64,000 nucleotides of DNA from Botryllus schlosseri (taxonomy: Eukaryota). Below the pieces are notes generated by a model. The model ran no database searches. It had not been told where the DNA came from and saw only the letters and a program-made list of their open reading frames with translations. Position numbers and translations under genes: made by a program. The stretch's first letter is position 1. Every line of letters starts with the position of its first letter. Positions 1,283-38,066 of this stretch are shown here, piece after piece. Location: contig CM119373.1 in assembly GCA_051294905.1 (NCBI GenBank), positions 34,658,001 through 34,722,000 on the forward strand, in the 5' to 3' direction.

Positions 1283-2338
1283 ATGGATAATGAAATGGAA
1301 CATAGAGAAATACAGCCAAATTTTAATCGGAAGACCGTTACTGGAAATGGAGGCGCAATCTTTGAATGCGACATTTGTGGAATGAAGTATCTATCCAAGA
1401 AGGGATTGCAGATGCATGTATCCAGACACTTAAGAAAGTTTGAATGTGACATTTGTGGGCATGCTTCATCATCCAAATATCATTTGAAATGTCACATGCT
1501 CATTCACAGCGACGTAAGAGAGTTTGAATGCGATTTCTGTGAAAAGGCGTTCACCCGAAAGTATGATCTGACCCAGCACATGGCTATACACAGCGACACC
1601 AAGGACTTCTTTTGCCTTGTTTGCGGTAAGATGTATTCTACTGAGAAACTTTTGCAGAGGCATGTGTCTGAACACCAACGAAACTTTTCCTGCGACGTTT
1701 GCGGACTTGCTTTTCAATCGAAAAAAACCTTGAAGCGCCACATGCTCATTCACACTAACGTGAAAGAGTTTAAATGTGATGTCTGTGAAAAGACCTTCGC
1801 CCAGAAGTTTACCCTGACTAGGCACATGAACATTCACACCGACACCAAAGGCTTCTTGTGTGATATTTGCGGTAAACTCTTTCCGTTGAAACATCACCTG
1901 CATCAGCACATGGATATCCACGCTGTTCTTAGAAGATATGGCTGTGAGCTATGTGATATGGCCTTCAGGAATAGGAGCAATCTGACCAGACACGTAAAGA
2001 TTCATGATGTGCCTGATACATTTGTATGTCCCATATGTGGACTAGGTTTTGCGAGGTACTCTGGATTGAGACACCACCTTCCAGTGCACATGAATGAAAA
2101 AATGTTTCATTGTGAAATATGCGGAAAGGCCTATTTCAGCGAAGATAAAGTTACAAGACACATGAAACTACATGTCAGCGACAATTTGGAATGTCCAGTA
2201 TGCGGATTAGGTTGCAGTAACTTGAAAAGTCACTTTATTTTGCATGTGAACGAAAGGAAATTTCAATGCGATGTATGCGGAAAGGCATTCTTGAGAAAAG
2301 GTGATGTTTTCGGCCATATGAAAATGCATTTCCAATAG
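1283..2338 (+). CDS. Tandem C2H2 zinc-finger protein, 351 aa, 12 finger units (one shortened); N-class a, C-class X
   Basis: Open ORF with C-x2-C-x12-H-x3-H repeats; ccATGG start context; in-frame TGA at 1277 upstream of the ATG. Confidence 0.93.
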   Translation: MDNEMEHREIQPNFNRKTVTGNGGAIFECDICGMKYLSKKGLQMHVSRHLRKFECDICGHASSSKYHLKCHMLIHSDVREFECDFCEKAFTRKYDLTQHMAIHSDTKDFFCLVCGKMYSTEKLLQRHVSEHQRNFSCDVCGLAFQSKKTLKRHMLIHTNVKEFKCDVCEKTFAQKFTLTRHMNIHTDTKGFLCDICGKLFPLKHHLHQHMDIHAVLRRYGCELCDMAFRNRSNLTRHVKIHDVPDTFVCPICGLGFARYSGLRHHLPVHMNEKMFHCEICGKAYFSEDKVTRHMKLHVSDNLECPVCGLGCSNLKSHFILHVNERKFQCDVCGKAFLRKGDVFGHMKMHFQ

Positions 2339-3317
2339 TCTTACTCGAGCTGCGTGTCCATTTCTATTTTCATTCATCAATAGTGAAATGCAAAGTAAGA
2401 TTGAAATATTCGAGTCATTTCCCGAAGCAAGGATGAAAAAATTTTGGATTGGAAAAACTTTTCAGATTTTTTAGCATGATACATGACACACTCAAATGAC
2501 GTCAGTGTGTCAAAATTGAAGGTTGCGCTTTTCTGTAAGTTTAGTGGAAACGGAATTCCGTCAACACTGCCATGAAGTTGAAGATACCAAAAGCAAATTT
2601 TGACTTTTCAACAGACTGAAGAACCTGATTATGCAGTCTCAATATTATTGCACTACTTACACTGTCGTCAAGTTGTAAATATCAAATTTGAAGTAAGCTG
2701 TCTATCTCTTTATTAAAGATAATGAGCTCTGCGTTTCCTACTCTTATTTGAGTATCAATGACTATGCTAACACCTCTTACAGCAATATACGAATTAGTTG
2801 TCTCATTGATTAACATGGTACAGTACCTATATACAATACTGCATGCACACGATTTTGTAGCATTGAATATATTATTGAATCACAGCAAGTGTTTAATGTG
2901 ATATCAGCCCGTTTGAGTACCAATGACTACTTTTACGACACCTAGCAATACGAGCTACTGAGTATCGTAACTATTTATTTAAAACGAGATTTACTACATC
3001 TCTACAACCAGTGGTAATGCTTGACCAGATTTACTGCATGCACAGTGCACATAGTTTTATCAATGTTGATGTTGTCGAATCACTTCAAGTGTTTTATGTG
3101 ATGTCTGCAGACCATAGCCGAGATAGTCCATTCGCTTTTGAAACCCTCCTTATTTTGAACACTTCGACTGTGGGTGGCCGAATGTGAATGTGAGACGTCT
3201 AATTCAATTTCATTTATGGATGTCATACAGAAAAATGTTTTGTTGCTAAATCCATAATCATGAGCCATCTGAACTCATTTATTTTTACTATGCTCTTGCA
3301 GATAAATAGGCCTAGAC

Positions 3318-3408
3318 CAGGGGTTCTCAACCTGGGGGTCGCGGGAGGCTCTCAGGGGGGGGCGCGAGAAATTGATGAAGTAAGTATAGGGGGGGGGGGG
3401 GGGTATAA
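3318..3408 (+). mobile_element. Solo left end of a Buster/Charlie-type hAT MITE
   Basis: Starts CAGGGGTTCTCAACCTGGGGGTCGCG after TAGAC; no right TIR seen; fused directly to ZNF coding sequence after a 15-G run. Confidence 0.6.
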
Positions 3409-3845
3409 ATTTGCGGCAAACTCTTCGCACTAAAACATAATCTGTTTCGACACATGAACATCCGCGCCGAGTTGAAAAGATATGTATGTGGTCTGTGTGG
3501 CATGGCCTTAACATCGATTGGCACTCTGTACAAGCATATAAAGATTCCTGCTGAGCCTAACAATTTAGCTGTCGCACCAAATAAGAATATTTTATGTCCT
3601 ATATGTGGACTAGGTTTTACGAGGAACTCCGGATTGAGACGGCATCTTCCAATTCATCTGAATAAAAAGAAGTTTCGATGCGAAATTTGCGGAAGGCATT
3701 TTTTGAGAAAGGCAGGCGTTCCACAACACATGAAAATCCATTTCAACAAGAATTTTGAATGTCCATTATGTGGGATAAGCCTGTCGAGTAGGAAAGCCTT
3801 GCGATATCACTGGCTCATCCACAGGAATCAGAAAAAATTTCAATG
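3409..3845 (+). pseudogene. Internal fragment of a C2H2 ZNF paralog (c-type upstream region, Y-type fingers), cut at both ends by MITE termini
   Basis: Reads CGKLFALKHNLFRHMNIRAELKRYVC...RYHWLIHRNQKKFQ; lacks start and last finger; acceptor AG retained at 3300-3301. Confidence 0.85.
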
Positions 3846-4323
3846 GGGTTGCATTTAAAACAAACGGTGTTTTAAACAAATACCCTTTTGAAAAAAAGAA
3901 TTTTGCCATAATTGTTTAAATACTTTCAGAAAATCGTGCAGTATATGAGCCTACAGACGATTTGCACCCAAAATAGTCGATGTATATGATGTAGGCTGGC
4001 TGGAACCTTGGAAATCGTCGTCGGCTCAACAGTTTGTGCGGGCACAGAATGGGTGTTCTGATGATCATGACCGCCGACCGTAAAAATGCTTCATAATGAA
4101 GTATTCCTGATTAAAGATATATTTGGTCTGTTTATGACAGTGATCGGAAGCCCTTTTCGCCGAAGATGCCATATTTACCCTACATTTTCAATTGTCAATA
4201 TTTTGACGTCACAACTAAATAGTCTTGATGTCATGGCTAAAAAAATCAAAAACATGTTTTAAACAAGGGCTTTGTTTTAATCACGTTTGATTTGAATTGA
4301 TTATTGTTTTAAATGCAACCCTA
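3844..4323 (+). mobile_element. Non-autonomous hAT (Ac-type) MITE, family with TIR YGGGGTTGCATTTAAAAC
   Basis: TIRs TGGGGTTGCATTTAAAACAA / TTGTTTTAAATGCAACCCTA; internally similar to 11368-11855; right flank paralogous to that copy, left flank replaced. Confidence 0.85.
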
Positions 4324-4500
4324 GCGTCTACTTGTTCAACTTTATTCATTGAAACCACACAAAACAAAGTTTTGGTTTTCGAATTAATTGTCATGAGCCA
4401 TTTTAACTCATTCAGTGTCTACCGTATTTTTGCAGATAACTAAATATAGGGTAAAACTGATTGAATCGTCAGACTTATTTGTACAATACCAATAAGTTCC

Positions 4501-5625
4501 ATGGATAACGAAATTGGAAATAAAGAAATACAACCAGATTTGAATCAACATACCACTACTGGAAATGGTGGCGTAAGCTTCGAATGCGATATTTGCGGCA
4601 TCAAGTATCAATCAAAAAAGGGATTCCAGATGCATGTATCCAGACACCTAAGAAAGTTTGCATGTGACTTTTGCGGGCGTGCTACATCTTCCAAATATCA
4701 GTTGAAACGTCACATGCGCGTTCACAGTGACGTAAAAGAGTTTGAATGTGATGTCTGTAGAAAGGCGTTCACCCAGAAGTATAATTTGACCCAGCACATG
4801 ACAATACACAACGCCACCAAGGACTTCTTTTGTCATGTTTGCGGTAAGATGTATTCTTCTGAGAAACGTTTGCGGAGGCATGTGTCTGAACACCAACGAA
4901 ACTTTTCCTGTGACTTTTGCGGTCTTGCTTTTCCATACAAAGGCATATTGCAACGCCACATGCTCATTCATGGTTCCACAAAACTGTTTAAATGCAATGT
5001 CTGTGAAAAGACCTTCACACAGAAGACTACGTTGACCACGCACTTGAACATTCACACCAATACCAGGGACTTTTTGTGTGATGTTTGCGGTAAACTCTTC
5101 GCATTAAAACATAATCTGTATCAGCACATGGCCATCCACTCCGGTCTGAAAAGATATGTCTGTGAGCTCTGTGATATGCCCTTCACGTTGAGGAGCAATC
5201 TGTACCAACATGTGAAGATTCATGGCGTGTCTAATACCTCCGCTGTCGCATCAAGTAAAAATATTGCATGTCCAATATGTGGACTAGGTTTTGCAAGGAG
5301 CTATGGATTGCGAAGGCATTTTCTGCATATGCACCTAAATGGATTGAAACAGCACCTCCCACTGCTCCTGAATGAAAATAAGTTTGAATGCGAAATATGC
5401 GGAAGGCGTTTTTTGAGACAGGATGGCGTTTCACTACACATGAAAATCCATTTCAACAAGAATTTTGAATGTCCAGTGTGTGGGATAAGCGTGTCAACTC
5501 GGGGAGCTTTGCGAAAACACTGGCTCATCCACGTGAATGAAAAGAATTTTCAATGTGAAATTTGTGGAATAGCATTCTTGAGAAAACGGAATGCCTCAGA
5601 TCACCTGAAAATACATTTCAAATAG
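4501..5625 (+). CDS. Tandem C2H2 zinc-finger protein, 374 aa, 12 fingers; N-class a, C-class Y
   Basis: Open ORF, ccATGG, acceptor AG at 4434-4435, in-frame TGA upstream at 4462. Confidence 0.93.
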   Translation: MDNEIGNKEIQPDLNQHTTTGNGGVSFECDICGIKYQSKKGFQMHVSRHLRKFACDFCGRATSSKYQLKRHMRVHSDVKEFECDVCRKAFTQKYNLTQHMTIHNATKDFFCHVCGKMYSSEKRLRRHVSEHQRNFSCDFCGLAFPYKGILQRHMLIHGSTKLFKCNVCEKTFTQKTTLTTHLNIHTNTRDFLCDVCGKLFALKHNLYQHMAIHSGLKRYVCELCDMPFTLRSNLYQHVKIHGVSNTSAVASSKNIACPICGLGFARSYGLRRHFLHMHLNGLKQHLPLLLNENKFECEICGRRFLRQDGVSLHMKIHFNKNFECPVCGISVSTRGALRKHWLIHVNEKNFQCEICGIAFLRKRNASDHLKIHFK

Positions 5626-6802
5626 TGCTAGTCAAGCTGCAGGTCGCTGTTCAGTCGCAATATAAACAGTAGGTTAGAAATTTCGTGTCCGGGCGAAGCA
5701 GGGCAGTGAACAAGTCGTGCCGTTCCATGTGAGAAGTCAATTATTTTGTCTCGCGTCATATTCCAGTTGCCACGAAGTCACGTCCTAGTCGGGTAGCAGA
5801 GGGTCGACTTTGAGTCGTAGGGTTGATATTCGAGTCTGAGTCCAAATCATTGTATTCAATGTTCACTTGTTCGGGGTTCATTCAAATCATATTTGAACGG
5901 TGATTTATCGTGATTCAGGACACATTAGTAAAAACTGGCAACGTCAGAGTATATACGTAGATCCTTAATCATGTGCCCATTTAGTATGTGAACAAGATAA
6001 CCCAAACACAATCCGACATGTATTCTCTTGTCAAAACATGCTACTTCCGTTTTATCGCTATAGTCCTTTTTACGCTATCTCCTGTTGCTTTTCATTCAAT
6101 GTGCAGGTCTCGTTTTCCAATACTTTTCAGATCTTGAATTTTTGCGACCACATTAAGTAGTTTTTGCATGTTACTTGACCTACTTCTACTTGTAACCGAT
6201 TTCTGGTGTATGTGTATGTGAATATCGTAATTTTTTATATAATATAACTTATGGTTTAACCTGGTATAATGCCTAACCAAGTTGACTGCATGCACACGAT
6301 TTTATATCATTGAGTTTACCATTATTGAATCACTTTGCGTACTTTGTGCGATATCGGTAGACTTTGACTGTTGACACCCTCTGGAGACTGAAGTTTGAGT
6401 TTGTCCGTAACATGTTTTGAAGGGGTCATAACCAACATGCAATTTAGCACTGCACGCAGGTATACCTAGTAAATGGATAGCAAACGTGTGGCCGTGGACA
6501 CGTAATTCAGTCTTTGAGAGCTGTAATTGATCTAGAAATTTTCTTCCTGCTGGTCGTGATTAGCTGCGACTTCATTTTTCAATTTTGATATAATAGCTTT
6601 CGTGACCAAATGAGAATGCGAGTCGACTTATTCAACCTGATACATAGAAATCGTTTAGAGAAATGATTATTTGTTGAATTTATAATCCCACGTTATTTGA
6701 ACTCATTCATTTTATACTGTATTCTCGCAGATAGATATAGTTTAAGGCTGATCGAATCGTCACAATTTTCGGTACAATATAATCAGTAGTCAACAAGGCA
6801 CC

Positions 6803-7615
6803 ATGGATCGTCAAAATCAAGTAATGGAACCATGTTTGAATCGCCAGGCCGTTACTGGAATTGGCAGTACAAGCTTAGAATGCTATTTCTGCAGCAAGAT
6901 GTATTCTTCTAAGAAAGTATTGAAGAAGCATTTGTCCGGACACCAACAAGACTTTAGCTGCGACTTTTGCGGGCTTACTTTTCAATACCAACACAGTTTA
7001 CAGCGCCACACGCTCGTTCACAGCAACGCAAGAGAGTTTAAATGTGATGTTTGTGAACAGACCTTCGCCCAGAAGTGTTCCCTATCCAGGCACATGAACA
7101 TTCACACAGACAACAAAGGCTACTTGTGTGATATTTGCGGTAAACTTTTTCTGTTAAAACATAATCTGCATCGACACATGGACATCCATGCTAGTTTTAA
7201 AAGATATGCCTGTGAGCTATGTGATATGGCCTTCAGGGATAGGAGCAATCTGACCAGACACATAAAGATTCATGGTGTGCCTAATACATTTTTATGTCCG
7301 ATATGTGGACTAGGTTTTACAAGAAACACTGGATTGAGAAAGCACGTTCCAGTGCACTTGAATGAAAAAAAGTTTCAATGTGAAATATGCGGAAAGGCCT
7401 TTTTGAGCAAAGAAAAAGTTACAGCACACATGAAAGTACATGTCAGCGAGAATCTGGAATGTCCTGTGTGCGGATTTGGTGTTTCGAGTCAAATTAACCT
7501 GAGGAGTCACTTTATCGTGCATGTGAATGAAAGGAAGTTTCAATGTGATGTATGCGGGAAGGCATTCTTGAGAAAGGCAGAGGTTTCCAGCCATATGAAA
7601 ATGCATTTCAAATAG
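6803..7615 (+). CDS. Tandem C2H2 zinc-finger protein, 270 aa, 9 fingers; N-class b, C-class X
   Basis: Open ORF, accATGG, acceptor AG at 6729-6730, in-frame TGA at 6749. Confidence 0.93.
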   Translation: MDRQNQVMEPCLNRQAVTGIGSTSLECYFCSKMYSSKKVLKKHLSGHQQDFSCDFCGLTFQYQHSLQRHTLVHSNAREFKCDVCEQTFAQKCSLSRHMNIHTDNKGYLCDICGKLFLLKHNLHRHMDIHASFKRYACELCDMAFRDRSNLTRHIKIHGVPNTFLCPICGLGFTRNTGLRKHVPVHLNEKKFQCEICGKAFLSKEKVTAHMKVHVSENLECPVCGFGVSSQINLRSHFIVHVNERKFQCDVCGKAFLRKAEVSSHMKMHFK

Positions 7616-8700: not shown

Positions 8701-8915
8701 TTTTAAACAGTGCAGGTGTGGGTGGCCGAATGTGGATGTGAGACGTCCTAATGAACTTGATTTATGGAAGTCGTACTAAGAAATGTTTTATTGCAGAATT
8801 CATAATAATGATCAATGTAAACTCATTCCTTTTTTATTATGTTCTCACAGAATAATATAGACTGATCTAATTGTGACGATCATCCGTGCAATAGAATTTC
8901 TACCAACAAGGTACA

Positions 8916-9725
8916 ATGAATCATCATGTACAAAATGGTGAAATGGTACTATATTTGAATCATAAGACTGGTATTATGAATGGACTCGCAAGCTCAGAAT
9001 GTGATGTTAGCGGGAAGACATGCTCTTCTAGGAAAGGATCGCGGAAGCATGTTTCGGGAAGCCAAAGAAAATTTTCCTGCGACTTTTGCGGGCTTGCTTT
9101 TCAAACGAAACAACAGTTAAAACGTCACATGCTCATTCACACTAACGTGAAAGAGTTTGAATGTGAAGTCTGTGGAAAGACTTTCGCCCTGAAGGGTACC
9201 CTATCCACGCACATGAACATTCACACCGACACTGAAGGCTTCTTGTGTGATATTTGCGGTCAACTTTTCTCGTGGAAACATAGTTTGCATCGACACATGG
9301 ACAACCACGCTGGTCTTAAAAGATATGGCTGTGAGCTATGTGATATGGCCTTCATGTATAAGAGCACTCTGTACAGACACATGAAGGTTCATGGTGGGTC
9401 TAATACATTTGTATGCCCCATATGGGGACTAGGTTTTGCGAGGAACTCCGGATTGACACAGCATCTTCCAGTGCACTTGAATGAAAAAAAGTTTCAATGT
9501 GAAATATGCGGAAACGCCATTTTGAGAAAAGATAAAGTTACAAGACACATGAAAGTACATGTCAGCGACAATTTGCAATGTCCAATATGCGGATTAACTT
9601 GCAGTAACTTGAAAAGTCACTTTATCATGCATGTGAATGAAAGAAAATTTCAATGCGATGTATGCGGAAAGGCATTCTTGAGAAAAGGAGACGTGATCAG
9701 CCATATGGAAATGCATTTCAAATAG
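8916..9725 (+). CDS. Tandem C2H2 zinc-finger protein, 269 aa, 9 units (first degenerate, one C->W, one shortened); N-class c, C-class X
   Basis: Open ORF; acceptor AG at 8849-8850. Confidence 0.88.
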   Translation: MNHHVQNGEMVLYLNHKTGIMNGLASSECDVSGKTCSSRKGSRKHVSGSQRKFSCDFCGLAFQTKQQLKRHMLIHTNVKEFECEVCGKTFALKGTLSTHMNIHTDTEGFLCDICGQLFSWKHSLHRHMDNHAGLKRYGCELCDMAFMYKSTLYRHMKVHGGSNTFVCPIWGLGFARNSGLTQHLPVHLNEKKFQCEICGNAILRKDKVTRHMKVHVSDNLQCPICGLTCSNLKSHFIMHVNERKFQCDVCGKAFLRKGDVISHMEMHFK

Positions 9726-11855: not shown

Positions 11856-12045
11856 GCGACAACTTGTTCAACTTTATTCGTTCAACTTTATTTATTGAAA
11901 CCACACAGAGAAAATTTTTGTTTTCGAATTAATTGTCATGAGCCATTTCAACTCATTCATTGTCTACCGTTCTACCGCAGATAACTAGATATATGTTAAA
12001 ACTGGATTAATCGTCATACTTATTTGTACAATACCAACAAGTTCC

Positions 12046-13275
12046 ATGGATAATGAAAATGAGAATAAAGAAATACAGCCAGATTTAAATCAACGGACCA
12101 TTACTGGAAGTGGTCGCGTAAGCTTCGAATGCTATATTTGCGGCATCAAGTATCAATCAAAGAAGGGATTCCAGAAGCACGTATCCAGGCACCTAAGAAA
12201 GTTTGCATGTGACTTTTGCGGGCGTGCTACATCTTCCAAATTTCAATTGAAACGTCACATGCTCGTTCACAGTGACATAAAAGAGTTTGAATGTGATGTC
12301 TGTAGAAAGGCGTTCACCCAGAAGTATAATTTGACCCGGCACATGACTATACACAGCGCCACCAAGGACTTCTTTTGTCATGTGTGCAGTAAGATGTATT
12401 CTACTGAGAAACGTTTGCAGAGGCATGTGTCTGAACACCAACAAAACTTTTCCTGTGACTTCTGCGGTCTTGCTTTTCCATACAAATGCACGTTACAACG
12501 CCACATGCTCATTCACGCCTCCATAAAAGAGTTTAAATGTGATGTCTGTGAAGAGTCCTTCACACAGAAGGCTACCTTGACCAGGCACTTGAACATTCAC
12601 ACCAATACCAGGGACTTTTTGTGTGATGTTTGCGGTAAACTCTTCTCGTTAAAACATAATCTGTATCAGCACATGGCCATCCACTCCGGTCTGAAAAAAT
12701 ATGCATGTGACCTATGCGATATGGCCTTCACATTGAGGAGCAATCTGTACAAACATATAAAGATTCATGGCGTGTCTAATACCTCAGCTGTCACATCGAG
12801 TAAGAATATCGCATGTCCTATATGTGGACTAGGTTTTGCAAGGAGCTATGGATTGCGAAGGCATTTTCTGCATATGCACCTATATCTGTACAAACATATA
12901 AAGATTCATGGCGTGTCTAATACCTCTGCTGTTTCATCGAGTAAGAATATTGCATGTCCAATATGTGGTCTCGGTTTTACGAGGAACTATGGATTGAGAA
13001 AGCACCTTCCACTGCACCTGATTGAAAAGAAGTTTCAATGCGAAATATGCGGAAGGCGTTTTTCGAGACAGGATAGTGTTCCACGACACATGAAAATCCA
13101 TTTCAACAATAATTTTGAATGTCCAGTATGTGGGATAAGCGTGTCGACTCGGGGAGCCTTGCGAAAACACTGGCTCATCCACGCGAATGAAAAGAATTTT
13201 CAATGTGAAATTTGTGGAATGGCATTCTTGAGGAAACGGAATGCCTCTGATCACATGAAAATACATTTCAAATAG
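12046..13275 (+). CDS. Tandem C2H2 zinc-finger protein, 409 aa, 13 fingers with an internal 141-bp duplication; N-class a, C-class Y
   Basis: Open ORF, ccATGG, acceptor AG at 11979-11980. Confidence 0.93.
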   Translation: MDNENENKEIQPDLNQRTITGSGRVSFECYICGIKYQSKKGFQKHVSRHLRKFACDFCGRATSSKFQLKRHMLVHSDIKEFECDVCRKAFTQKYNLTRHMTIHSATKDFFCHVCSKMYSTEKRLQRHVSEHQQNFSCDFCGLAFPYKCTLQRHMLIHASIKEFKCDVCEESFTQKATLTRHLNIHTNTRDFLCDVCGKLFSLKHNLYQHMAIHSGLKKYACDLCDMAFTLRSNLYKHIKIHGVSNTSAVTSSKNIACPICGLGFARSYGLRRHFLHMHLYLYKHIKIHGVSNTSAVSSSKNIACPICGLGFTRNYGLRKHLPLHLIEKKFQCEICGRRFSRQDSVPRHMKIHFNNNFECPVCGISVSTRGALRKHWLIHANEKNFQCEICGMAFLRKRNASDHMKIHFK

Positions 13276-14476
13276 TTCTGGTCAAGCTGCAGGTCGCTGT
13301 TCAGTCACAATATGAACAAGTGGGTTGGAAATTTCGAGTCAAGGCGAAGCAGGGTAGTGAACAAGTCGTGCGGTTCCATGCGAGAAGTCAATTAATTTGT
13401 TTCAATTATTTTGTCTCGCGTCATATTCCAGTTGCCACGGAGTCACGTCGTAGTCGGGTAGCAGAGCGTCGACTTCAAGTCGTAGGGTTAATATTCGAGT
13501 CTGAGTCCAAATCATTGCATTCAATGTTCACTTGTTCTGGGTTCATTCAAATCATATTTGAACGGTGATTTGTCATGAGTCGGGACACATTAGTGAAAAC
13601 TGTCATCGTCAGAGTGTATAACGTACATCCTTTATTATGTGCCCATCTTGTTTGTGAACGAGATAACCCAAACACAATCTGACATGTATTCTCTTACCAA
13701 CACATACCACTTCAGTTTCATCGCTATAGTCCTTTTTATGCTATCTCCTGTTGCCTTTCTTTCAGTGTGCAGGCCTCGTTTTCCAATACTTTTCAGATCT
13801 TGAATTTTTGCGACCACATTAAGTAGTCTTTGCATGTCTTGGTAATAGTTACTTGACCTACTTCTACTTGTAACTGAATACTGGTGTGTGTGTATGTGAG
13901 TGTCGTAATTTTTTATTTATGTAATTTATGCTGTAACCTGGTATAATGCCTGACCAAGGGACCAAGTTAACTGCATGCACACGGTTTTATATCATGAGTT
14001 ATTATAACCGTTATTGAATCACTTTGCGTATTTCATGCGATATCGGTAGACTTTGACACCCTGAGGAGTTTGAGTTTGTCTGTAACATGTTTTGAATGAG
14101 ACATTACCAGCATGCAATTTAGCACTGCACGCAGGTATACCTAGTAAATGGGTGGCAAACCTGTGGCCTTGGACACGTAATTCAATCTTTGAGAGCTGTA
14201 ATTGATCTAGAAATTTTCTTCACGCTGGGTGTGATTAAATGCGACATCATTTTTCAATTTTGATATAATAGCGTTCGTGACCAAATGAGAATGTGAGTCG
14301 ACTTATTCTATTATATACATAGAAATCGTTCAGAGAAATGATTATTTGTTGAATTTATAATGCCAGGTTATTCGAACTCATTCATTTTATACTGTATTCT
14401 CGCAGATAGATATAGTTTAAGGCTGATTGAATCGTCACAATATTCCGTACAATTTAATCTGTACCAACAAAGTACC

Positions 14477-23931: not shown

Positions 23932-24657
23932 ATGGATCATCAAAGTCAAGAAATGAAACCATGTTTAAATCGCCTGGCCGTTACTGAAATTGGCAGTACG
24001 AGCTTTGAATGCGACTTTTGCGGGCTTGCTTTTCAAAAGAAACATAACTTGAGACGGCACAAGATCATTCACACCAACGTGAAAGAGTTTAAATGTGATG
24101 TCTGTGAAAAGACCTTCGCCCGGAAGTGTGCCCTAACTAGGCACATAAACATTCACACCGACACCAAAGGCTTCTTGTGTGATATTTGCGGTAAACTCTT
24201 TCCGTTGAAACATAGTCTGCATCGGCACATGGACATCCACGCTGGTCTGAGAAGATATGCCTGTGAGCTATGCGATATGGCCTTCAGGTATAGGAGCAAT
24301 CTGTGCAGACACATAAAGATTCATGGTGTGTCTAATACATTTGTATGTCCCATATGTGGACTAGGTTTTCCGAGGAACTCCGGATTAAGACAGCACCTTC
24401 CAGTGCACTTGAATGAAAAAAAGTTTCATTGTGAAATATGCGGAAAGGCCTATTTCAGCGAAGGTACAGTTACAAGACACATGAAAGTACATGTCAGCGA
24501 CAATTTGGAATGTCCCGTATGCGGATTAGGTTGCAGTAACTTGAAAAGTCACTTCATTTTGCATGTTAATGAAAGGAAATTTCAATGCGATATATGCGGA
24601 AAGGCATTCTTGAGAAACGGGGATGTTTTCAGCCATATGGAAATGCATTTCAAATAG
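23932..24657 (+). CDS. Tandem C2H2 zinc-finger protein, 241 aa, 8 units; N-class b (first finger deleted), C-class X
   Basis: Open ORF, accATGG, acceptor AG at 23853-23854. Confidence 0.92.
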   Translation: MDHQSQEMKPCLNRLAVTEIGSTSFECDFCGLAFQKKHNLRRHKIIHTNVKEFKCDVCEKTFARKCALTRHINIHTDTKGFLCDICGKLFPLKHSLHRHMDIHAGLRRYACELCDMAFRYRSNLCRHIKIHGVSNTFVCPICGLGFPRNSGLRQHLPVHLNEKKFHCEICGKAYFSEGTVTRHMKVHVSDNLECPVCGLGCSNLKSHFILHVNERKFQCDICGKAFLRNGDVFSHMEMHFK

Positions 24658-25694
24658 TGTTACTCGAGCTGCGTGTCCATTTCTGTTTTCATGTGTCAGT
24701 CGTGAAATGGAAAGTAAGACTGAAATATTCTAGTCATTTCTCGAAGCAAGGATGAAGGGGGAACATTTGAAAATTTTGATTGAGAAAACTTTTTCAGATT
24801 TTTTAGCATGATACATAACAGACACGGAGGTTACGCATTTCTGTAAATTTAGTGGAAACGGTATTCGGTCAACACCGCCATGAAGTTGAAGATACCAAAA
24901 ACAAATTGTGGCGTTTCAACAGACTGAAGAACATGATCATGCAGTCTCAACAGTATTGCAGTACCTACACTGCCTGGAAGTTACAAATACAAATCTTTAA
25001 TTAATCTGTCGATTTATCTCTTTACTAAATGTTGACTACGATAATGAACCCTGCAAGTTAGGCTACAACTACAACAGTGTTTCATATACTTTTATTTGAC
25101 TACCAATTACTATACTTTCACCTCTTATAGCACTATACGAATAAGGTATTACATGGACTTATCTGATATAATACCTATTTAGGTATACTGCATGCACACG
25201 ATTTTGTAACATTGAGTACAATAATTAATCACTAGCTTTTAATGTGATATTGGCCTGTTTGAGTAACGATGACTACTTTTACCACATCTACTATACGAGC
25301 TTTTGAGTACCGCAACTTTTTATGTAAAAAATGATTTAATACATGTATCAACCAGTGATCATGCCTAACCAGATTTATTGCATGCACGCATTGATTTTCA
25401 ATTTTGATTTGTCGAATGATGGATGTAGGCTAATATCGGCAGACCCATAGTTAAGATGGTCCATGCGACTTTGAAACCTTCCTTGTTTTTAATAGTACGA
25501 CTGTGGGTGGCCGAATGTGAGACGTCTTATTCAACATGATTTATGGAAGTCCTAAAAAGAAATGTTTTATTGCTGAATTCAAAATCATGAGCAATGTGAA
25601 CTCATTCATTTTTTATTATGTTTCCACAGATTAATATAGACTGATCTAATTGTGACGATCAACCGTACAATAGAATCTCTACCAACAACGTACC

Positions 25695-26612
25695 ATGGAT
25701 CATCAAGTACAAAATGGCGAAATGGTATCATATTTGAATCAGCAGAATGTTACTATGAATGGACTCGCTAGCTCAGAATGTGATGTTAGCAGGAAGACAT
25801 GCCCTTCTAAGAAGGAATCGCCGAAGCGTATGTGGGGAAGGGAAGGAAAATTTTCCTGCGAATTTTGCGGGCTTGCATTTCAAAGGAAACAGGTATTAAA
25901 ACGACACTTACTCGTTCACACTAACATGAAAGAGTTTAAATGTGATGTCTGTGAAAAGACCTTCGCCTGGAAGTGTGCCCTATCCAGGCACATGCACATT
26001 CACACCGACACCAAGGACTTCTTGTGCGATATTTGCGGCAAACTCTTCGCACGGAAAGATAGTCTGTTTCAACACATGGATATCCACGCCGGTTTAAAAA
26101 GGTATGCATGTGAGCTGTGTGATATGGAGTTTACAGCAAGGAGCAGTTTCTACAAGCATATAAAGGTTCATGCCGTGTCTAATACTGTCGCTGCCGTACC
26201 AAGTAAGAATATTGTATGTCCCTTATGTGGACTTGGTTTTACAAGTAACTACGCATTGAGACGGCACCTTCCAGTGCACCTGAACGAGAAGAAGTTTCAA
26301 TGCGAAATATGCGGAAGGCGTTTTTTGAGACAGGATGGCGTTCCACTACACATGAAAATCCATTTCAACAAGAACTTTGAATGTTCAGTATGTGGGGCAA
26401 GAGTGTCGACTCGGAAAGCCTTGCGAAATCATTGTCTCATCCACGGGAATGAAAAGAAATTTTATTGTGAAATTTGTGGAAAGGCATTCTCGAGGAAAGG
26501 CAATGCCTCCGATCACATGAAAATACATTTGGGATCGTGCTGGCCAAGCTGCAGGTCCATGTCGAGTGTGCGGTCGGTCGCGGCCGCTGTTCAGTCACAA
26601 TATTGTCATTAG
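25695..26612 (+). CDS. Tandem C2H2 zinc-finger protein, 305 aa, 9 units (first degenerate), extended C-terminus; N-class c, C-class Y
   Basis: Open ORF, accATGG, acceptor AG at 25628-25629; ancestral catttcaaatag stop context replaced. Confidence 0.9.
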   Translation: MDHQVQNGEMVSYLNQQNVTMNGLASSECDVSRKTCPSKKESPKRMWGREGKFSCEFCGLAFQRKQVLKRHLLVHTNMKEFKCDVCEKTFAWKCALSRHMHIHTDTKDFLCDICGKLFARKDSLFQHMDIHAGLKRYACELCDMEFTARSSFYKHIKVHAVSNTVAAVPSKNIVCPLCGLGFTSNYALRRHLPVHLNEKKFQCEICGRRFLRQDGVPLHMKIHFNKNFECSVCGARVSTRKALRNHCLIHGNEKKFYCEICGKAFSRKGNASDHMKIHLGSCWPSCRSMSSVRSVAAAVQSQYCH

Positions 26613-27735
26613 ATTGGAAATTTCGAGTCAGGGCGAAGCAGGGTAATGGACAAGACACGCAGTTCCATGTGACAAGTCAATTATTTTTTTTTAATTGGTT
26701 TTTCGCACTCCATTTCCAGTTGCCACTGAGTCAAGTCCCAGTCGGGTAGCAGAGGGTCGACTTCGAGTCATAGGGTTAATATTCGAGTCCGAGTCCAAAT
26801 CATTGTATTCACTGTGCATTCAAGTCATATTTGAATAGTGATTTATCGTGAGTCATGACGCATTAGTAAAAACAGGTAACGTCAGAGTGTATACATAGAT
26901 CTGATATCATGTGGCAATCTAGTATGTTAACGAGATAACCCAAACACAATCTGGCACGTATTTTTCCTACCGCCCCATGCCACTTCAGTTTCATCGCTAC
27001 AGTCCTTTTTATGCTATCTTCTGTTGCTTTTCATTCAGTGTTCTGGCCTCGTTTTCCAGTACTTTTCAGATCTTAAATTTTTACGGCCATATAAAGTAGT
27101 TTTTGCATGTCTTAGTAATAGCTACTTCTACTTGTAACCAGATTCTGGTGTGTGTGTATGTGAGTATCGTATTTTTTTTAATTGTATTTCATGGTGTAAC
27201 CTGGTATAATGCCTAATCAAGTTTACTGCATGCACACGGTTTATATCATTGAGTTTACTTACCATTATTGAATCACTTTGCGAATTTCATGCGATATCAG
27301 TAGACTTTGACACCCTCTGGAGTTTGCGTTTGTCCGTTACATGTTTTGAAGGAGACATAACCGGCATGCAATTTTGCACTGCACGCAGATATACCTAGAA
27401 CAGGGGTGGGATACCTGCGGCCGTGGACACGTAATTCAATCGTTGAGAGCTTCATTTGATATTCAAATTTTCTACGCGTGAATAAATGCGACTTCATTTT
27501 TCAATTTTAATATAGTAGCGGCCTTTGCAATCTGAGCCCCAGTGTTGCGACAGCCCTTGTCCAAATGAGGATGTGTGATGAGTTTTCAACTTCGATTGTG
27601 GAACACAAAGACATGTTTCTTCCTGAATTGAAAATCACGAACCTTTTGAAGTCACTCATTTTCTGTTATATTTTGCAGATTAAAATCGAGTTGAGTTAGG
27701 ACAAAACGATATATACTGACTAAGTATCATGGATC

Positions 27736-28894
27736 ATGGATCATCATATTGAAAATGAAGGAATGGAAGTTCATTTGAATCACCCGTGCCTTAGTGGAAG
27801 CAGCTGTGTAAGCATAGAATGTGATGTTTGCGGCAAAATCGATCTCACTGAGGAAGGATTGCAGAGTCATGTATGTGGACACAAAAAAAACTTTGCCTGC
27901 GACATTTGCGGACTTGCTTTTCAAAATAAATTTCGCTTGAAACGTCACATGCTGATTCACAGTAACGTTAAAAAGTTTGAATGTGAAGTATGTGGAAAAG
28001 GCATTAGGCTAGTTTAACCCAGCACATGAACGTTCACACCAAGGACTTCGATGCCAGATACTTTTGTGATGTTTGCGGCAACATGTTTGCTCCCAAGATA
28101 GGGTTGCGACAGCATGGCGCCAGACAGCAAAGAAATTATGCATGTGACTTTTGTGGTATTGCTTTTTCGTACAAATCTGACTTGAGACGTCACGTGCTCA
28201 TTCACGGCTCCGCAAAAGAGTTTGAATGCGATGTCTGTGAAAAGACCTTGACACAGAAGAGTACGTTCTCATTCACCTTGACACAAAAGATTTTGAATGC
28301 AATTTTTGGGGAAAGGCCCTCTCCCAGAAGCATACTTCGACCAGGCACATGGTCATTCACAACGTCACCCAGGACGTCTTATGCGATATTTGCGGCAAGC
28401 TATTCGTGCAGAAACATAGGTTGTTTCAACACATGGATATCACTCCCGGTTTGAAAAGATATGTATGTGAGCTGCGTGACATGGCCTTTACGTTGAGGAG
28501 CAATCTGAACCAGCATATAAAGATTCGTGGTGTGTCCAATACTTCCTCTGTCGCATCGAATAATTATGTTGTGTATCCCATATGTGGACTAGGTTTCACG
28601 AGGAACTCCGGATTGACACAACACCTTCCAATACACCTGAATAAAAAGGAATTCCAGTGTGAAATATGTGGGAAGGCGTTCTTTAGAAAGGGCGGCGTTG
28701 CACAACACAATAGAATACATTTCAACGATAAGATCACATGTCCAATATGCGGATTAAGGATTTCGAGTCGCTGTGCCTTGCGAAATCACCTTGTCGTGCA
28801 TAATAATGAAAATAAATTTCAATGGGAAATTGGTGGAATGGCATTCTTAAGAAAACGGAATGCCTCTGATCACATGAAAATACATTTCAAATAG
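27736..28894 (+). pseudogene. e-class ZNF pseudogene with Z-type C-terminus and multiple frameshifts
   Basis: ORF pieces 27736-28017, 28026-28454 and 28349-28894; deletion near 28005 relative to the 32196 paralog. Confidence 0.9.
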
Positions 28895-28999
28895 TGCTGG
28901 CCAAGCTGCAAGTCGATGTCTAGTGCAGTGATTCTTAACATTTAGTAATCCACCAAACACTTACGCTAATCGCACCTTAGAGGAAGTGACCACGTATGC

Positions 29000-29580
29000 T
29001 TGTTATGTGATGTTTGCAGTAAACTATATCCTACTGAGGAAGGATTGGAGAGTCATCTGTGTGGACACCAAAGAATCTTCACCTACGGCTTTTCCGGGCT
29101 TGCTTTTCAAAAGAAATATCGCTGGAACCTTCATGTGCTGATTCACATCAACGTAAAAAAGTTAGAATGCGATGTCTGTGGAAAGTCATTCACCCAGAAG
29201 CAGCATACGTTGAACGTGCACATGAACACTCACACCGACACCCAGGAATTTGTGTGCGGATTTTGCGGTAAACTCTTCCTGTTTCGTCTGAGTCGTCACA
29301 CTGGTTTGAAAAGTTATGAGTGTGAATTTTGTGGCATGGCCTTTACCTTGATGAACAATCTGTACATAAAGATCTGTATATAAAGATTCATGTTGTGCCA
29401 AATACCCTTGCTGTCGAATCGGAGTATTGTATGTCCCATATGTGAATTACGTTTTACGAAGAGGCATAATTTCCAAAAGCACCTTCTCGTGCATGGAAAT
29501 TAAATGAATTTTCAATGTGAAATATGTGGAAAGTCATTTTTGAGCAAATCAAATGCTTCGATAGCCACATGAAAACAGAA
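29000..29580 (+). pseudogene. 5'-truncated degenerate ZNF fragment behind a solo MITE end (28926)
   Basis: ORF 29000-29383 reads CDVCSKLYPTEEGLESH...CDVCGKSFTQK...CEFCGMAF; paralog of 17300-17672. Confidence 0.8.
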
Positions 29581-30537: not shown

Positions 30538-30900
30538 TAGGGTTGTTCAAAAAAAACTTTTTTTTCCAAATCTCACTCGCCTAATGACTAAATCGTCAGG
30601 TTGTCCAAGAAAACGATGCACACCAAATTTGACTCAATTCCAACGAGTAAAGGCCGTGCAATCTTGAATTGAAAATTTTAAATTATTATCAAAAATAAAA
30701 AAATAAAAATTCTCAAATTTTTCTGTCAACCCCATGAAATTGTTGAGCTGTCTTCAAAAACGATGCAAAACAAATTTGACTCAATTCCGACTAGTAGAAG
30801 CGGAGTTATTCGAGTTTTTCGTTGATAATTTTCGGATTATCCTTGATCCGGGGATCATCAACCAAAAACTCCATAGAAATACCTACTTGGAATCGTATGT
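30538..30900 (+). mobile_element. Half copy (left arm) of the foldback hAT element family
   Basis: Starts TAGGGTTGTTCAAAAA and aligns with the left arm of 31295-31913; another partial right arm at ~40325-40472. Confidence 0.7.
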
Positions 30901-31294
30901 TCCTAACGAAAGTAATTTGGAGATTTCAATATTTCACCACTGTACCGACAATCCTGATGGAAGGTATAGAAATAACAGCATGCAACAAAGTGACTAATAA
31001 CAATTGGCCCACCCATCAACATTTATAACTTGCCCTAAATTTTCGAAAACACTCCCTCAATCAAGTCTACTCCACAGGCGAATCTGATCACATGGGCTGA
31101 GAAAAGATAAATATTTGATAGTAATATGTGAAACTAATAATAATGACGAAATTCATTCGTGAACATAAAAAAAGTTTTGCGCAACTATAACCACTCCCAG
31201 TAACTCTTTATTACATGACCTCTATCAATTTTTATACCTATAGCCAGACAGTATTAAAAAGTAGAATAGTCCGGTGTTCACCTGAAATGGACAT

Positions 31295-31913
31295 TAGGGC
31301 TGTTCAAAAATAACTTTTTTCTTCGGATTCCAGCCATTCACTGATTAAATTGTCAGGTTACCCTAAAAAACGCTGCACACCAAATTTGGTTCGATTCTAA
31401 CAAGTATAGGACTCCGCAGATCCAATTAAAATTTTTAATTTATTATGGAAAATTAAAAAAAAAAATTTTCCAATTTTCCTGCCAACCCCATGAAATTGTT
31501 GAGCTGTCTTGAAAGACGTTGCAAAACAAATTTGAGTCAATTCCGACCAGTAGAAGCTGAGTTATTAGAGTTTTTCGTTGATAAATCGCGGATTATCCAC
31601 CTATCAAGGATAATCCGAGAAGTTTCAACGAAAAACTCTAATAACTCCGCTTCTACTGGTCGGAATTGACTCAAATTTGTTTTGCAACGTCTTTGAAGAC
31701 AGCTCAACAATTTCATGGGGTTGGCAGAAAAATTTGGAAAATTTTTTTTTTTTGATTTTCCATAATAAATTAAAAATTTTAATTGGATCTGCGGAGGCCT
31801 TTACTGGTTGGAATCGAGTGAAATTTGGTGAGCAAGGTTTTCTACTGCAACCTGACGATTTAAGAGGTGACCGCCTTGAATCGGGAAAAAAAAGTTATTT
31901 TTGAACAGCCCTA
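31295..31913. mobile_element. Foldback-type hAT MITE, 619 bp, almost wholly palindromic
   Basis: Ends TAGGGCTGTTCAAAAATAAC / GTTATTTTTGAACAGCCCTA; ~290-bp inverted arms; exact 8-bp TSD ATGGACAT (31287-31294, 31914-31921). Confidence 0.92.
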
Positions 31914-32195
31914 ATGGACATGGACGGGACAGTTTGACATGGTTATCTGGTTTCCAATTAGCTCATTACGACTATATCCTGGAATGCTGCCGGGAATAAA
32001 AAAATGTTTGGCCCTCTGACCTAGTACGATAGCCTTTATCCAAATGGGAATACACAATGAGTTTTCAACTTGAATTGTGGAGCATTGTTTGTTGCTAAAT
32101 TGAAAATCATGAACCATTTGCAGTCACTCATTTTCTGTTATATTCTTGCAGGTCAAGTTGAGTTAGGACAAAGCAATCTCTACGAACTAGGTACC

Positions 32196-33454
32196 ATAGA
32201 TCATCACATTCAAAATAAAGAAATGGAAGTTCATTTGAATCACCCATACCTCAGTGGAAGTGGCCGCGTAAGCATAGAATGCGATGTTTGCGGCAATATC
32301 GATTTTACTGAGGAAGGATTTCAGAGTCATGTGTGTGGACACAAAAAAAACTTTGCCTGCGACATTTGCGGACGTGCTTTTCAAAAGAAATATCGATTGA
32401 AATGTCACATGCTGATTCACAGTAACGTGAAAAAGTTTGGATGTGAAGTATGTGGAAAGGCATTCATCCAGAAGGCTAATTTAACCCAGCACATGAACGT
32501 TCACACCAATGACTTCGATACCAGATACTTTTGCGATGTTTGCGCAACATGTTTTCTACCAAGATAGGGTTGCGACAGCATGTGGCTAGACACCAAAGAA
32601 ATTATGCATGTGGCTTTTGTGGTATTGCTTTTTCGTACAAATCTGACTTGAGACGTCACGTGCTCATTCACGGCTCCACAAAAGAGTTTGAATGCGATGT
32701 CTGTGAAAAGACCTTCACACAGAAGGGTACGTTGACCAGACACTTGAACATTCACACCAATACCAGGGACTTTTTGTGCGATGTTTGCGGCAAACTATTC
32801 GCGCTGAAACATAATCTGTTTCAACACATGGATATCCATGCCGGTTTGAAAAGATATGCATGTGAGCTGTGTGACATGGCCTTTACGTTGAAGAGCAATC
32901 TGAACCAGCATATAAAGATTCATGGTGTGTCCAATACTTCCGCTGTCGCATTGAATAAGAATGTTGCCTGTCCCATATGTGGACTAGGGTTCACGAGGAA
33001 CTCCGGATTGAGACAACATCTTCCAGTGCACTTGAATGAAAAAAAGTTTCAATGTCAAATATGTGGAAAGGCATTTTTGAGAAAATACGACCTGCCACCA
33101 CACATGAAACTACATTTGAACGAGAATTTGGAATGTTCCGTATGTGGAATTGGGGTTTCGAGTCGTGCTGGCTTGCGAAGTCACGTTCTCCTGCACAGAA
33201 ATGAAGCAAAGTTTCAATGTGAAATATGTGGGAAGGCATTCTTGAGAAAGGATGCCGTTGCAGGACACACTAGAATTCATTTCAACGAGAATTTGACATG
33301 CCCAATATGCGGAGTAAGGATTTCAAGTCGCATTGCCTTGAGAAAACACCTTCCCGTGCATGGAAATGCAAGGAAGTTTCGTTGTGAGGTATGCGGGAAG
33401 TCATTTTTGCAAAAATCAAATTATTCTAGGCACATGAAAGCACATTTCAAATAG
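32196..33454 (+). pseudogene. e-class ZNF paralog with ATG->ATA start change and a 1-nt frameshift near 32544; otherwise a long intact finger array
   Basis: gtaccATAgatcatcac start context; tgcgcaac versus tgcggcaac in the 27736 paralog; ORFs 32070-32567 and 32531-33454. Confidence 0.8.
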
Positions 33455-35781: not shown

Positions 35782-36467
35782 TTTTAGGGGGAGGGGCTTA
35801 TCGCTATGCTGTTGGCTTTTGAGGGAACAATTATTTCCGCATTGCATCATTTTCTTGCTATGTAACGGAAAAAAGTGTAATTTTGAATGTCCGTGAAATG
35901 GCAAAGTAACAAATTTGACAGCTCTGCAGGAACTAGGTTATACAACGGAACCTTTCGAGTATCTCATACCCTACTAATTCAACAAAAATTATAAATGCAC
36001 CTTTTTACTGCAACTTTTGTCAAATTAAGTGCAACTTTCTCGCGATTTTAGTGCAACAAAAACTTGCCCTACTGATCACTTTCACTGCATGCACTCAATT
36101 TTGCATCGTTGAATGACTTCGTGTGTTTGATGTAATATCGGGTTACCTAACTCGTAATGGTGTTGGATCATTCGCCTATGAGACCCAAGTTTCGAGTTAT
36201 GCCGTATCGTGTTTTTGGAGTAGATGAGTCATATTATCAATATGATATTAATTAGCAGTCGATTCGCGGATATCTGGATATCCTATTACGGCTGTGTTTA
36301 TGTCCAAATGAGAATGTTCAATAGAAATTGGAAACCATGCTTTAATAATCACGAGCCTTTTGGCCTCATTCGTTTTGTACAGTGGTTTTAGGATAAATAT
36401 CAAATTAATTTAGGACGAAACTGATTGTCATAATCACCCGCTATTGAATCTTTACCATCGAGGTACC

Positions 36468-37655
36468 ATGGATCAAGAAATTCCAAATCGTGAAATACAA
36501 TCATACTCGAATCATCACACTTTTGCTGAAAGTGGCAGGGTGGAAAGCTTTGAATGCGGTATCTGCTGCAAAATATATCTAAGTAGGAAGGGATTGCAGA
36601 GGCACGTGTCCTTACACCAAAGAAAGTTTGTATGTGACTTTTGCGGGCTTGCCTCACCATCAAATTATCACCTGAAACGTCACATGCTCATCCACGGGGA
36701 CATGAAAGAGTTTGAATGTGATGTATGTGGAAAGTCGTTCACTCTGAAGTATAATTTGACTAATCACATGTCTATACACAACGATACCAAGGACTTCTTT
36801 TGTGATGTTTGCGGCAAGATGTATTCTACTAAGAGAGGTTTGCAGAGGCATGTCTACGGACACAAACGAAAGTTTTCCTGTGACTTTTGCGGTCTTGCTT
36901 TCCCACACAAATCTACCTTGAAGCGCCACGTGCTCATTCACGTCACCGTAAAGGAGTTAGAATGCGATGTCTGTGGAAAAGCGTTCACCCTAAAAGCTAG
37001 TTTGACCAAGCATATGCGTGTTCACACCGGCACCAATGACTTCTTGTGCGATGTTTGCGGTAAACTGTTTCCTTCGAAACAGAATCTGTATAGACACATT
37101 AACTGTCACTACGGTTTCAAAAACTATGCGTGTGAGATTTGCGGCATGGCAGTTACCTCGAGACCTGTTCTGTACGCGCATATGAAAAGGATTCATATGC
37201 CTAAGACGTCTACCGAGAATCACGCATGTCCCGTATGCGGTCTGTGTCTTGCAAATAAAAACATCTTGCAAGAGCACCGTCTAGTGCACACGAATGAAAG
37301 AAAGTTTCAATGTGAGATATGTGGAAAGGCATTTTTGAAAAAATGTCACGTGCGAGCACACATGAAAGTGCATTTCAACGAGAATTTCCTATGTCTATTA
37401 TGCGGATTAGAGGTTTCGAATCGCGATAACTTGCGAGCTCATTATCTCGTACACCGTAATGAAAGGGGATTTCAGTGTGAAGTATGCGGGAAGTTATTTC
37501 CGAGAAGATGTGACGTTCGACGACACGCGAAAAGGCATTTTGACGGGAATTTGGCATGCCCAGTATGCGGAGTAAGGGTTTTGAGTCGCAGTTCCTTGCG
37601 GAAACACCTTATCACGCATGCGAATGAAAAGAGGAAGTTTGAATGTGAAATCTGA
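36468..37655 (+). CDS. Tandem C2H2 zinc-finger protein, 395 aa, 13 complete fingers; d-class; 14th finger lost to a premature TGA
   Basis: gtaccATGG at 36468; acceptor AG at 36390-36391; ancestral in-frame stop at 37713-37715. Confidence 0.88.
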   Translation: MDQEIPNREIQSYSNHHTFAESGRVESFECGICCKIYLSRKGLQRHVSLHQRKFVCDFCGLASPSNYHLKRHMLIHGDMKEFECDVCGKSFTLKYNLTNHMSIHNDTKDFFCDVCGKMYSTKRGLQRHVYGHKRKFSCDFCGLAFPHKSTLKRHVLIHVTVKELECDVCGKAFTLKASLTKHMRVHTGTNDFLCDVCGKLFPSKQNLYRHINCHYGFKNYACEICGMAVTSRPVLYAHMKRIHMPKTSTENHACPVCGLCLANKNILQEHRLVHTNERKFQCEICGKAFLKKCHVRAHMKVHFNENFLCLLCGLEVSNRDNLRAHYLVHRNERGFQCEVCGKLFPRRCDVRRHAKRHFDGNLACPVCGVRVLSRSSLRKHLITHANEKRKFECEI

Positions 37656-38066
37656 GAAAAGTCATTCGTGAGAAAAGCGACTGTCTCTGAACATGTGAAG
37701 ATACCTTTAAAATAGTGTTACTCAAGCTGCGTTGTCAGTCTTGGTCACCGTCCAGTCACGCAGTGGAAAGTATATTGGAATATTTGAATCCGCGATCAAA
37801 CAAGGATAAAGATTACTTACGAGCATTCGAAAATTTATTTGATGCGTAGCAGAGTTGTCTCAAATCTAACCGGCAGAAGCGAAGTTACAAGGGCAGAATA
37901 TTTGGTGTTTGAAATGATATAAAGTGGGTGGTTCCAAAACAGGGACGGTTAACTTCTCCAGTCGGCGGGCCGGATATGGAAAAATGAAGTACCTGACGGG
38001 CCGGAGTCCTAGGTCGACACATTCATCGCGGAATTATCCATCCATACAAGGAATAAGTCGTATTTA

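Follow-up and report, generated by a model that had tools for sequence, protein, structure and literature searches.

A stretch of 64,000 nucleotides from the tunicate Botryllus schlosseri (C3:34,658,001-34,722,000, called the window hereafter) holds most of what is probably a lineage-restricted tandem array comprising some 20 Krüppel-type poly-C2H2 zinc-finger (ZNF) genes that evolves by birth and death, diversifies in DNA binding and carries ahead of its genes a 3' splice site receiving a non-coding leader. Among animal transcription factors, no class evolves faster than lineage-specific zinc-finger clusters, for which tunicates have, to our knowledge, scarcely been surveyed. The sequence shows multi-gene blocks duplicated in tandem, mosaic paralogs made by unequal crossing-over or gene conversion, fingers gained, deleted or deprived of zinc ligands, and copies that have died. 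The surviving proteins would be sequence-specific DNA binders with a diversifying target specificity, and the motif found upstream of the genes would be a working 3' splice site for a leader without coding sequence, be it the tunicate spliced leader (SL) added in trans or a 5' exon that is non-coding.

Scanned in all six frames, the window contains 122 intact C-x2-C-x12-H-x3-5-H fingers; they lie between 1367 and 37619, every one on the + strand, with none on the - strand or past 37715. In Pfam, five representative open reading frames (ORFs) matched C2H2 zinc-finger families only, with E-values down to 1e-61, and PF00096, PF13465 and PF13894 scored far over their cut-offs, as expected of Krüppel-type poly-C2H2 proteins. 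The 16 same-strand paralogous loci of the original prediction, namely nine open, four disrupted and three fragments, were found again by the scan and by a locus survey; seven of the 16 are thus dead. The ATGs of the open genes, after which these are named (g1283 and so on), lie at 1283, 4501, 6803, 8916, 12046, 14477, 23932, 25695 and 36468. The coding part of each gene is one exon, made of an N-terminal peptide of ~27 amino acids (aa) and 8-13 finger units in a fixed architecture, with nothing further, and one alignment with fixed linker lengths accommodates all paralogs. The ORFs and this alignment bear out the single-exon layout and finger number first proposed. Thirteen ORFs of 218-409 codons are still open at a synonymous divergence (dS) of up to 0.6; the reading frames called open are indeed so, but several contain individually damaged fingers.

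In a whole-genome search, matches to g4501 with more than 55% identity were confined to C3:34.637-34.696 Mb. The whole array comprises ~20 loci over ~59 kb and its first locus lies ~21 kb upstream of the window (window coordinate -21397), so the range first given for the cluster is right for the loci within the window but not for the start. All other matches to the g4501 family in the genome were at most 47% identical. The search for family size and taxonomic range suggested with the original prediction returned these ~20 loci at one locus, and nothing closer than 41% identity in public protein sets (5.8 billion proteins), where the matches, from barnacle, wasp and fish, were generic poly-ZNFs; the linker signature, on the other hand, proved not to be specific to the cluster. 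An exhaustive HMMER search gave at most 40% identity among the best 150 matches, below which a short relative could rank, and exact-protein look-ups for four paralogs returned no record. In the paper describing the chromosome-level assembly of B. schlosseri, zinc fingers are unmentioned (PMC12448946).

The array bears many traces of duplication. The block 3845-8484 is repeated at 11369-16146 with 86-90% identity, 14633-17225 at 24010-26568 with 84% and 18229-21620 at 36072-39577 with 82%, and a 3.4-kb unit is repeated upstream of the window with 89% identity. Long-form genes have three extra N-terminal fingers that come from an internal three-finger duplication. Moreover, the nearest paralog changes between the N-terminus, fingers F5-F8 and fingers F9-F12, which reveals mosaic paralogs. 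For instance, g14477 joins a g6803-like N-terminus to g8916-like fingers, g25695 a g8916-like N-terminus to g4501/g12046-like C-terminal fingers, and g1283 a long-form N-terminus to short-form-like C-terminal fingers. Owing to this mosaicism the paralog tree is poorly resolved, with six of its 10 inner branches unresolved. Within open genes, some fingers are without a Cys ligand and a 3-aa deletion in finger 11 is common to four genes. Regarding the fast turnover claimed at first, birth and death is supported by pseudogenes, block duplications and mosaics, but the fast rate is without cross-species support, paralog dS being 0.09-0.6.

Internal duplications were also observed at the same place in two genes. 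In g12046 a finger was duplicated together with its long linker (12814-13017), and in g4501 a partial duplication (5269-5388) destroys finger 9. Both are within-gene unequal exchanges.

Surviving proteins are constrained. The ratio of nonsynonymous to synonymous divergence (dN/dS) ranged from 0.35 to 0.6 over whole genes and from 0.22 to 0.5 for scaffold codons, and it was below 1 in every pair. At the codons of the DNA-contact positions of the helix (-1, 2, 3 and 6) it was roughly 2-3 times higher, up to 3.5 in the youngest pair. Entropy amounted to 1.40 bits at contact positions versus 0.78 elsewhere (p = 1e-6). Among four phylogenetically independent recent pairs, replaced codons made up 34% of contact codons (50/147) versus 12% of scaffold codons (75/625; odds ratio (OR) 3.8, p = 1.5e-9). 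Replacements thus concentrate at helix positions -1, 2, 3 and 6. This pattern is as expected for DNA-binding fingers with diverging specificity, and no arms race is shown by it alone.

The linkers joining the fingers are of unusual types. As first reported, TGEKP is absent from the cluster (0 of 114 linkers; TGE.P and TG..P likewise 0/114 each) and the linkers quoted then, TNVKEF, TDTKGF, AGLKRY, LNEKKF and QRNF, are all present. The canonical 7-residue H-to-C spacing was found in 80 of the 114 linkers (70%), the other lengths being 5, 6 and 15 residues, mixed in a fixed order. The 7-residue linkers retain K/R4 in 71/80 and F/Y6 in 76/80, with G2 in only 14/80 and P5 in none of the 80. K4 touches the backbone of the DNA, and the aromatic at position 6 packs against the N-terminus of the helix (PMC8084297). 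The original prediction had taken non-TGEKP linkers as a distinguishing mark of the cluster, which they are not. Ten ZNF loci elsewhere in the genome have no TGEKP in any of their 225 linkers, most of which are of the AG[V/I]KNH type. Across the 495.5-Mb assembly, H-TGEKP occurs 38 times versus 17 for the reversed-pattern control, and H-AG[V/I]KNH has 660 exact matches versus 1. The expanded ZNFs of B. schlosseri as a rule use non-TGEKP linkers. This near-absence of TGEKP genome-wide is the more notable by-product of the analysis, and it bears on how essential this linker is for DNA binding.

The dominant ZNF expansion of the genome uses an H-AG[V/I]KNH-x-C linker, with 10-48 fingers per exon and almost no sequence before the first finger. 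Examples were seen at C1:4.06, 5.14, 10.08, 32.56, 36.95 and 37.22 Mb and at C11:2.93 Mb. A homology search of the public protein sets with one gene of this type found no tunicate or other close relative. The other ZNF exons sampled in the genome have very short pre-finger leaders, and finger-only exons look usual in this genome.

Upstream of the ATG, homology between paralogs extends over only 100-170 bp in older pairs. Its conserved elements are ACTCAT, a pyrimidine tract (67-81% pyrimidine) and CAG. ACTCAT fits the branch-point consensus yUnAy, and its branch A is located exactly 25 nt ahead of the AG in all nine loci measured. The composite motif made of these three elements was detected 10 times on the + strand, with each occurrence at a ZNF locus, and the - strand has none. 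All loci that have a 5' region retain the YAG, including the members upstream of the window and g36468 (TAG), with the pseudogene at 18.6 kb (AAG) as sole exception. The leader from acceptor to ATG measures 65-77 nt in nine window loci and ~49 nt in the upstream members. Stops in this leader close the ATG frame in eight of the nine loci checked; therefore no N-terminal coding exon can enter via the conserved acceptor there, as had been argued from the in-frame stops ahead of the ATGs at 1283, 4501 and 6803. The ATG stands in an ACCATGG context, and ATG, Kozak context, stop position and upstream splice-site motif are all conserved.

By its sequence, the region has the layout of an SL trans-spliced ascidian gene, that is a 3' splice acceptor upstream of the ATG without coding continuity. 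In Ciona about half of the genes are SL trans-spliced and the length of the outron peaks near 100 bp (PMC4691747), and SL trans-splicing in B. schlosseri is described in work cited in PMC3691228. By analogy, the conserved block of ~100 bp would fit a short outron followed by an SL acceptor well. It is rather likely that branch point, pyrimidine tract and YAG form a functional 3' splice site, for which the SL seems a somewhat likelier partner than a non-coding 5' exon in cis. The alternative that the gene is unspliced, with ACTCATTC as initiator and a leader of ~95 nt, appears less probable, though plausible. An initiator combined with a downstream promoter element (DPE) was also considered for the conserved upstream motif and not adopted, AGATA sitting 3 nt off the canonical DPE position. 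A genome search with the Ciona spliced leader and its donor gave 55 near-matches versus 37 for the control and no exact match, and did not identify the SL gene of the species.

All genome matches outside the cluster begin at the first finger and the ~27-aa N-terminal peptide is therefore specific to the cluster. It is less conserved than the fingers. In Pfam, neither KRAB (PF01352) in any ORF of the cluster or spacers nor ZAD (PF07776) gave a match, and ORFs of the spacers held no domain, the only match other than ZNFs in the 30 kb upstream being the end of an SPB4/DDX55-like helicase. A hidden effector exon was rejected on the grounds that older paralog pairs have no conserved block farther than ~170 bp upstream of the ATG and that these searches of spacers and upstream DNA gave no further Pfam domain. 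The array does not have the arrangement that defines FiNZ-ZNFs, a 28-aa sequence on a separate upstream exon (PMC10547256), as judged by exon layout and absence from public sets including cyprinids. The genes had been called effector-less. This holds in that no Pfam accessory domain was found, but it is not secure, as they possess a private ~27-aa N-terminal peptide and the FiNZ domain itself is 28 aa only (PMC10547256). The term is compatible with all the sequence evidence and not proven. With no known effector domain attached, the proteins may act after binding through the N-terminal peptide, through partner-binding fingers or by simple occupancy.

Several observations weigh against the interpretation given at the outset. 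Four bulk RNA-seq runs, shallow and of unspecified tissue, were sampled at 6-13% over window positions 1001-7000, and almost no reads were found in the coding regions there, none of them clipped or joined at the acceptors. A few read pairs on g1283, from one run, flank the acceptor on both sides and report no joint, and no indexed RNA run containing the genes was found. The splice motif is itself ambiguous: ACTCATTC fits an initiator as well, and ~25 nt upstream of it is an AT-rich, TATA-like box. Support for positive selection is weak, since the difference of contact from scaffold codons in nonsynonymous versus synonymous changes is only borderline (OR 2.1, p = 0.055), and tree-based inference is undermined by recombination between paralogs. 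Canonical DNA binding may be weakened or interrupted by the loss of T1-G2 and P5 and by the linkers of 5, 6 and 15 residues. Finally, several open copies have lost zinc ligands and may be decaying.

The spacers contain repeats relevant to the original prediction, which saw the array as embedded among hAT transposons and short interspersed elements (SINEs). High-copy non-autonomous elements with terminal inverted repeats (TIRs) are indeed present, but the hAT/SINE class was not established. A ~440-bp TIR element has ~4,700 first-look candidates genome-wide, 85-88% identical, and a ~620-bp palindromic TIR element has more than 10,000, at 96-98% identity, which points to a very recent burst of the latter. 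The TIRs begin with TAGGG or GGGG, with no clean target duplication observed. A search of the spacers for autonomous hAT or other transposons gave no ORF of transposase size or family. RNA reads at 3.85-4.33 kb match the ~440-bp element partially, at its ends, and their loose ends point to other loci; therefore copies of this element elsewhere are transcribed.

In this setting, the array might be the tunicate counterpart of the KRAB-, ZAD- and FiNZ-ZNFs, recognizing and repressing transposable elements (TEs), with a turnover driven by an arms race with the surrounding elements. The concentration of replacements at DNA-contact positions, the birth-and-death dynamics with mosaic paralogs and the very young and abundant TIR elements of the genome, some of them inside the cluster, are in keeping with such a role, as are the covariation of ZNF and TE loads across metazoans and the mere 28-aa N-terminal sequence of FiNZ (PMC10547256). 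It is nonetheless unlikely, since any DNA-binding paralogs that diverge are expected to diversify at their contact sites, no effector is recognizable and the N-terminal peptide is conserved less well than the fingers. The family is also small, the much larger AG[V/I]KNH-linker ZNF fields on C1 being likelier TE sensors, and its expression was near zero in the four bulk RNA runs. An even more elaborate proposal, that of a transposon-surveillance ZNF system evolved by ascidians, with this cluster as one battery, in which finger-only proteins have non-TGEKP linkers, a short N-terminal peptide replaces KRAB or FiNZ and the SL resolves multi-gene precursors, is very improbable. The opposite possibility is that of a largely decaying relic, silent or nearly so, whose open copies have only recently been freed from constraint. 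The seven disrupted or fragmentary loci, the lost zinc ligands or deleted fingers of several open copies and the scarcity of RNA reads, no RNA run containing the genes having been found, would agree with it. Yet every pair has a dN/dS well below 1, thirteen ORFs have stayed open at dS up to 0.6, and ATG, Kozak context, stop position and splice-site motif are conserved, the AG being lost in the pseudogene only; the RNA sampling, in addition, was shallow. A mere relic is thus quite unlikely. It may also be asked whether the fingers mainly bind RNA or proteins instead of DNA, like some fingers with non-canonical linkers. TGEKP is characteristic of DNA-binding C2H2 proteins (PMC8084297) and is missing here, P5 and G2 are lost and 5-, 6-, 7- and 15-residue linkers interrupt the array. 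But the positions of highest variability are exactly the canonical base-contact ones, linker K/R4 and the aromatic position 6 are retained and most linkers keep the canonical spacing, which makes this option very unlikely.

The transcription of the genes from multi-gene precursors, split by SL trans-splicing at the acceptor ahead of each cistron as an operon-like battery, was considered as well. Canonical poly(A) hexamers (AATAAA/ATTAAA) were counted over the cluster from window coordinate -21400 to 37700, where the sense strand has 53 versus 82±8 expected and the antisense strand 92 versus 87±8. In intergenic DNA only, the figures are 39 versus 59±8 in sense and 83 versus 71±8 in antisense, and five spacers are without any such hexamer. 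On the contrary, the flanking DNA (37.7-64 kb) shows no depletion, with 35 versus 36±6 in sense and 46 versus 41±6 in antisense. This sense-only depletion, along with a branch point, a pyrimidine tract and YAG ahead of every cistron, suggests that transcription reads through and is resolved by trans-splicing. The genes share one strand, and Ciona operons are enriched in genes with a single exon (PMC2760879). However, the duplicated blocks are not independent, which inflates the depletion statistic, and the counts cover canonical signals only. The ~100 bp conserved upstream of each gene could be its own promoter. Spacers measure 0.9-4 kb in the window and reach 7.9 kb at most where the cluster extends upstream of it, whereas Ciona operon genes abut with spacers below 100 bp (PMC2760879), and an operon in the Ciona sense was rejected on this spacing. 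Polycistronic transcription is accordingly highly improbable.

Table. Loci of the zinc-finger array and repeat elements, in window coordinates.
Feature	Position	Strand	Description
g1283	1216..2338	+	open long-form, 351 aa, 12 finger units, one with a 3-aa deletion; acceptor 1215|1216, ATG 1283
fragment	3273..3858	+	acceptor motif at 3273 and C-terminal fingers only (3409-3843)
~440-bp TIR element copy	3846..4325		directly upstream of the conserved 5' block of g4501; second copy 41336-41773
g4501	4436..5625	+	open long-form, 374 aa, 12 fingers; finger 9 disturbed by partial internal duplication
g6803	6731..7615	+	open short-form, 270 aa, 9 fingers
g8916	8851..9725	+	open short-form, 269 aa; all zinc ligands kept in only 6 of 9 units
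g12046	11981..13275	+	open long-form, 409 aa, 13 fingers, internal finger duplication; block duplicate of g4501
g14477	14406..15280	+	open short-form, ATG 14477, 7 of 9 units intact, mosaic
g16354	16289..17194	+	disrupted, frameshift near 16796-16839
fragment	17338..17672	+	stops and frame change; fragment 17338-17669
pseudogene	18560..19852	+	two frameshifts, 3 stops (18627-19849); acceptor AG mutated to AAG; closest to g36468, 74-78% aa identity
g23932	23855..24657	+	open, 241 aa, 8 units (7 intact)
g25695	25630..26612	+	open, 305 aa; usual stop lost, frame extended; mosaic
disrupted long-form copy	27670..28894	+	two frameshifts (27736-28891)
fragment	28976..29575	+	stops present
composite of nested palindromic TIR elements	30538..31913		contains ~620-bp piece 31290-31913
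disrupted long-form copy	32126..33454	+	ATG changed to ATA at 32196, one frameshift near 32549-32567; fingers otherwise intact; copy 32196-33451
g36468	36400..37655	+	most divergent open member; 13 fingers and a truncated 14th; acceptor TAG, not CAG

The upstream neighbour of the cluster is an exon for the C-terminal extension of an SPB4/DDX55-like DEAD-box helicase (PF13959, E = 6e-10), on the + strand at C3:~34,629,400. Downstream of the cluster, the sole sizeable ORF other than ZNFs encodes 368 aa (window 46911-48017, +) and gave a weak sub-threshold CD20/MS4A-like match (E = 1.5e-4).

The cluster is a compact and fully resolved case of birth-and-death evolution in which recombination between paralogs is visible. 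If its acceptors are true SL trans-splice sites, it also offers a test bed for duplicated genes that carry their own trans-splicing signals along. Its likeness to SL trans-spliced ascidian genes (PMC4691747, PMC2760879) lies in a conserved 3' splice site shortly upstream of the ATG and followed by a non-coding leader, in ~100 bp of conserved upstream sequence, which is the modal outron length of Ciona, and in single-exon genes on the same strand. It departs from Ciona operons by its 1-4 kb spacers where the genes of the latter abut, and the SL on its mRNAs is putative. With the AG[V/I]KNH-linker genes of the same genome it shares finger-only exons with very short pre-finger leaders, absence of TGEKP and clustering. 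These genes are nevertheless at most 47% identical to it, have H and not F/Y at linker position 6, carry 10-48 fingers per exon and exist in hundreds of copies versus ~20.

Like the KRAB-ZNFs of tetrapods, the ZAD-ZNFs of insects and the FiNZ-ZNFs of cyprinid fish, the array is made of clustered and fast-diversifying finger arrays, and the FiNZ-ZNFs illustrate that an N-terminal sequence of ~28 aa can define such a family (PMC10547256). Unlike in these three families, its N-terminal peptide is encoded in the finger exon and not in a separate upstream exon, and is less conserved than the fingers; KRAB (PF01352) and ZAD (PF07776) were not detected. When compared with lineage-specific poly-C2H2 clusters of metazoans (PMC10547256; for mammals, PMC2443715), the B. 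schlosseri array differs by the lack of an accessory domain and of TGEKP, by its ~20 loci at a single locus and by mixed linker lengths in a fixed order. It resembles them in its tandem same-strand paralogs with fingers in one exon, gene-block duplication, gain and loss of fingers, pseudogenes, replacements at positions -1, 2, 3 and 6 and the absence of orthologues outside the lineage. The evolutionary mode of the array is ordinary for such genes: by its defining domains the cluster does not belong with the KRAB-, ZAD- or FiNZ-ZNFs, and it behaves like the known lineage-specific poly-ZNF clusters of metazoans.

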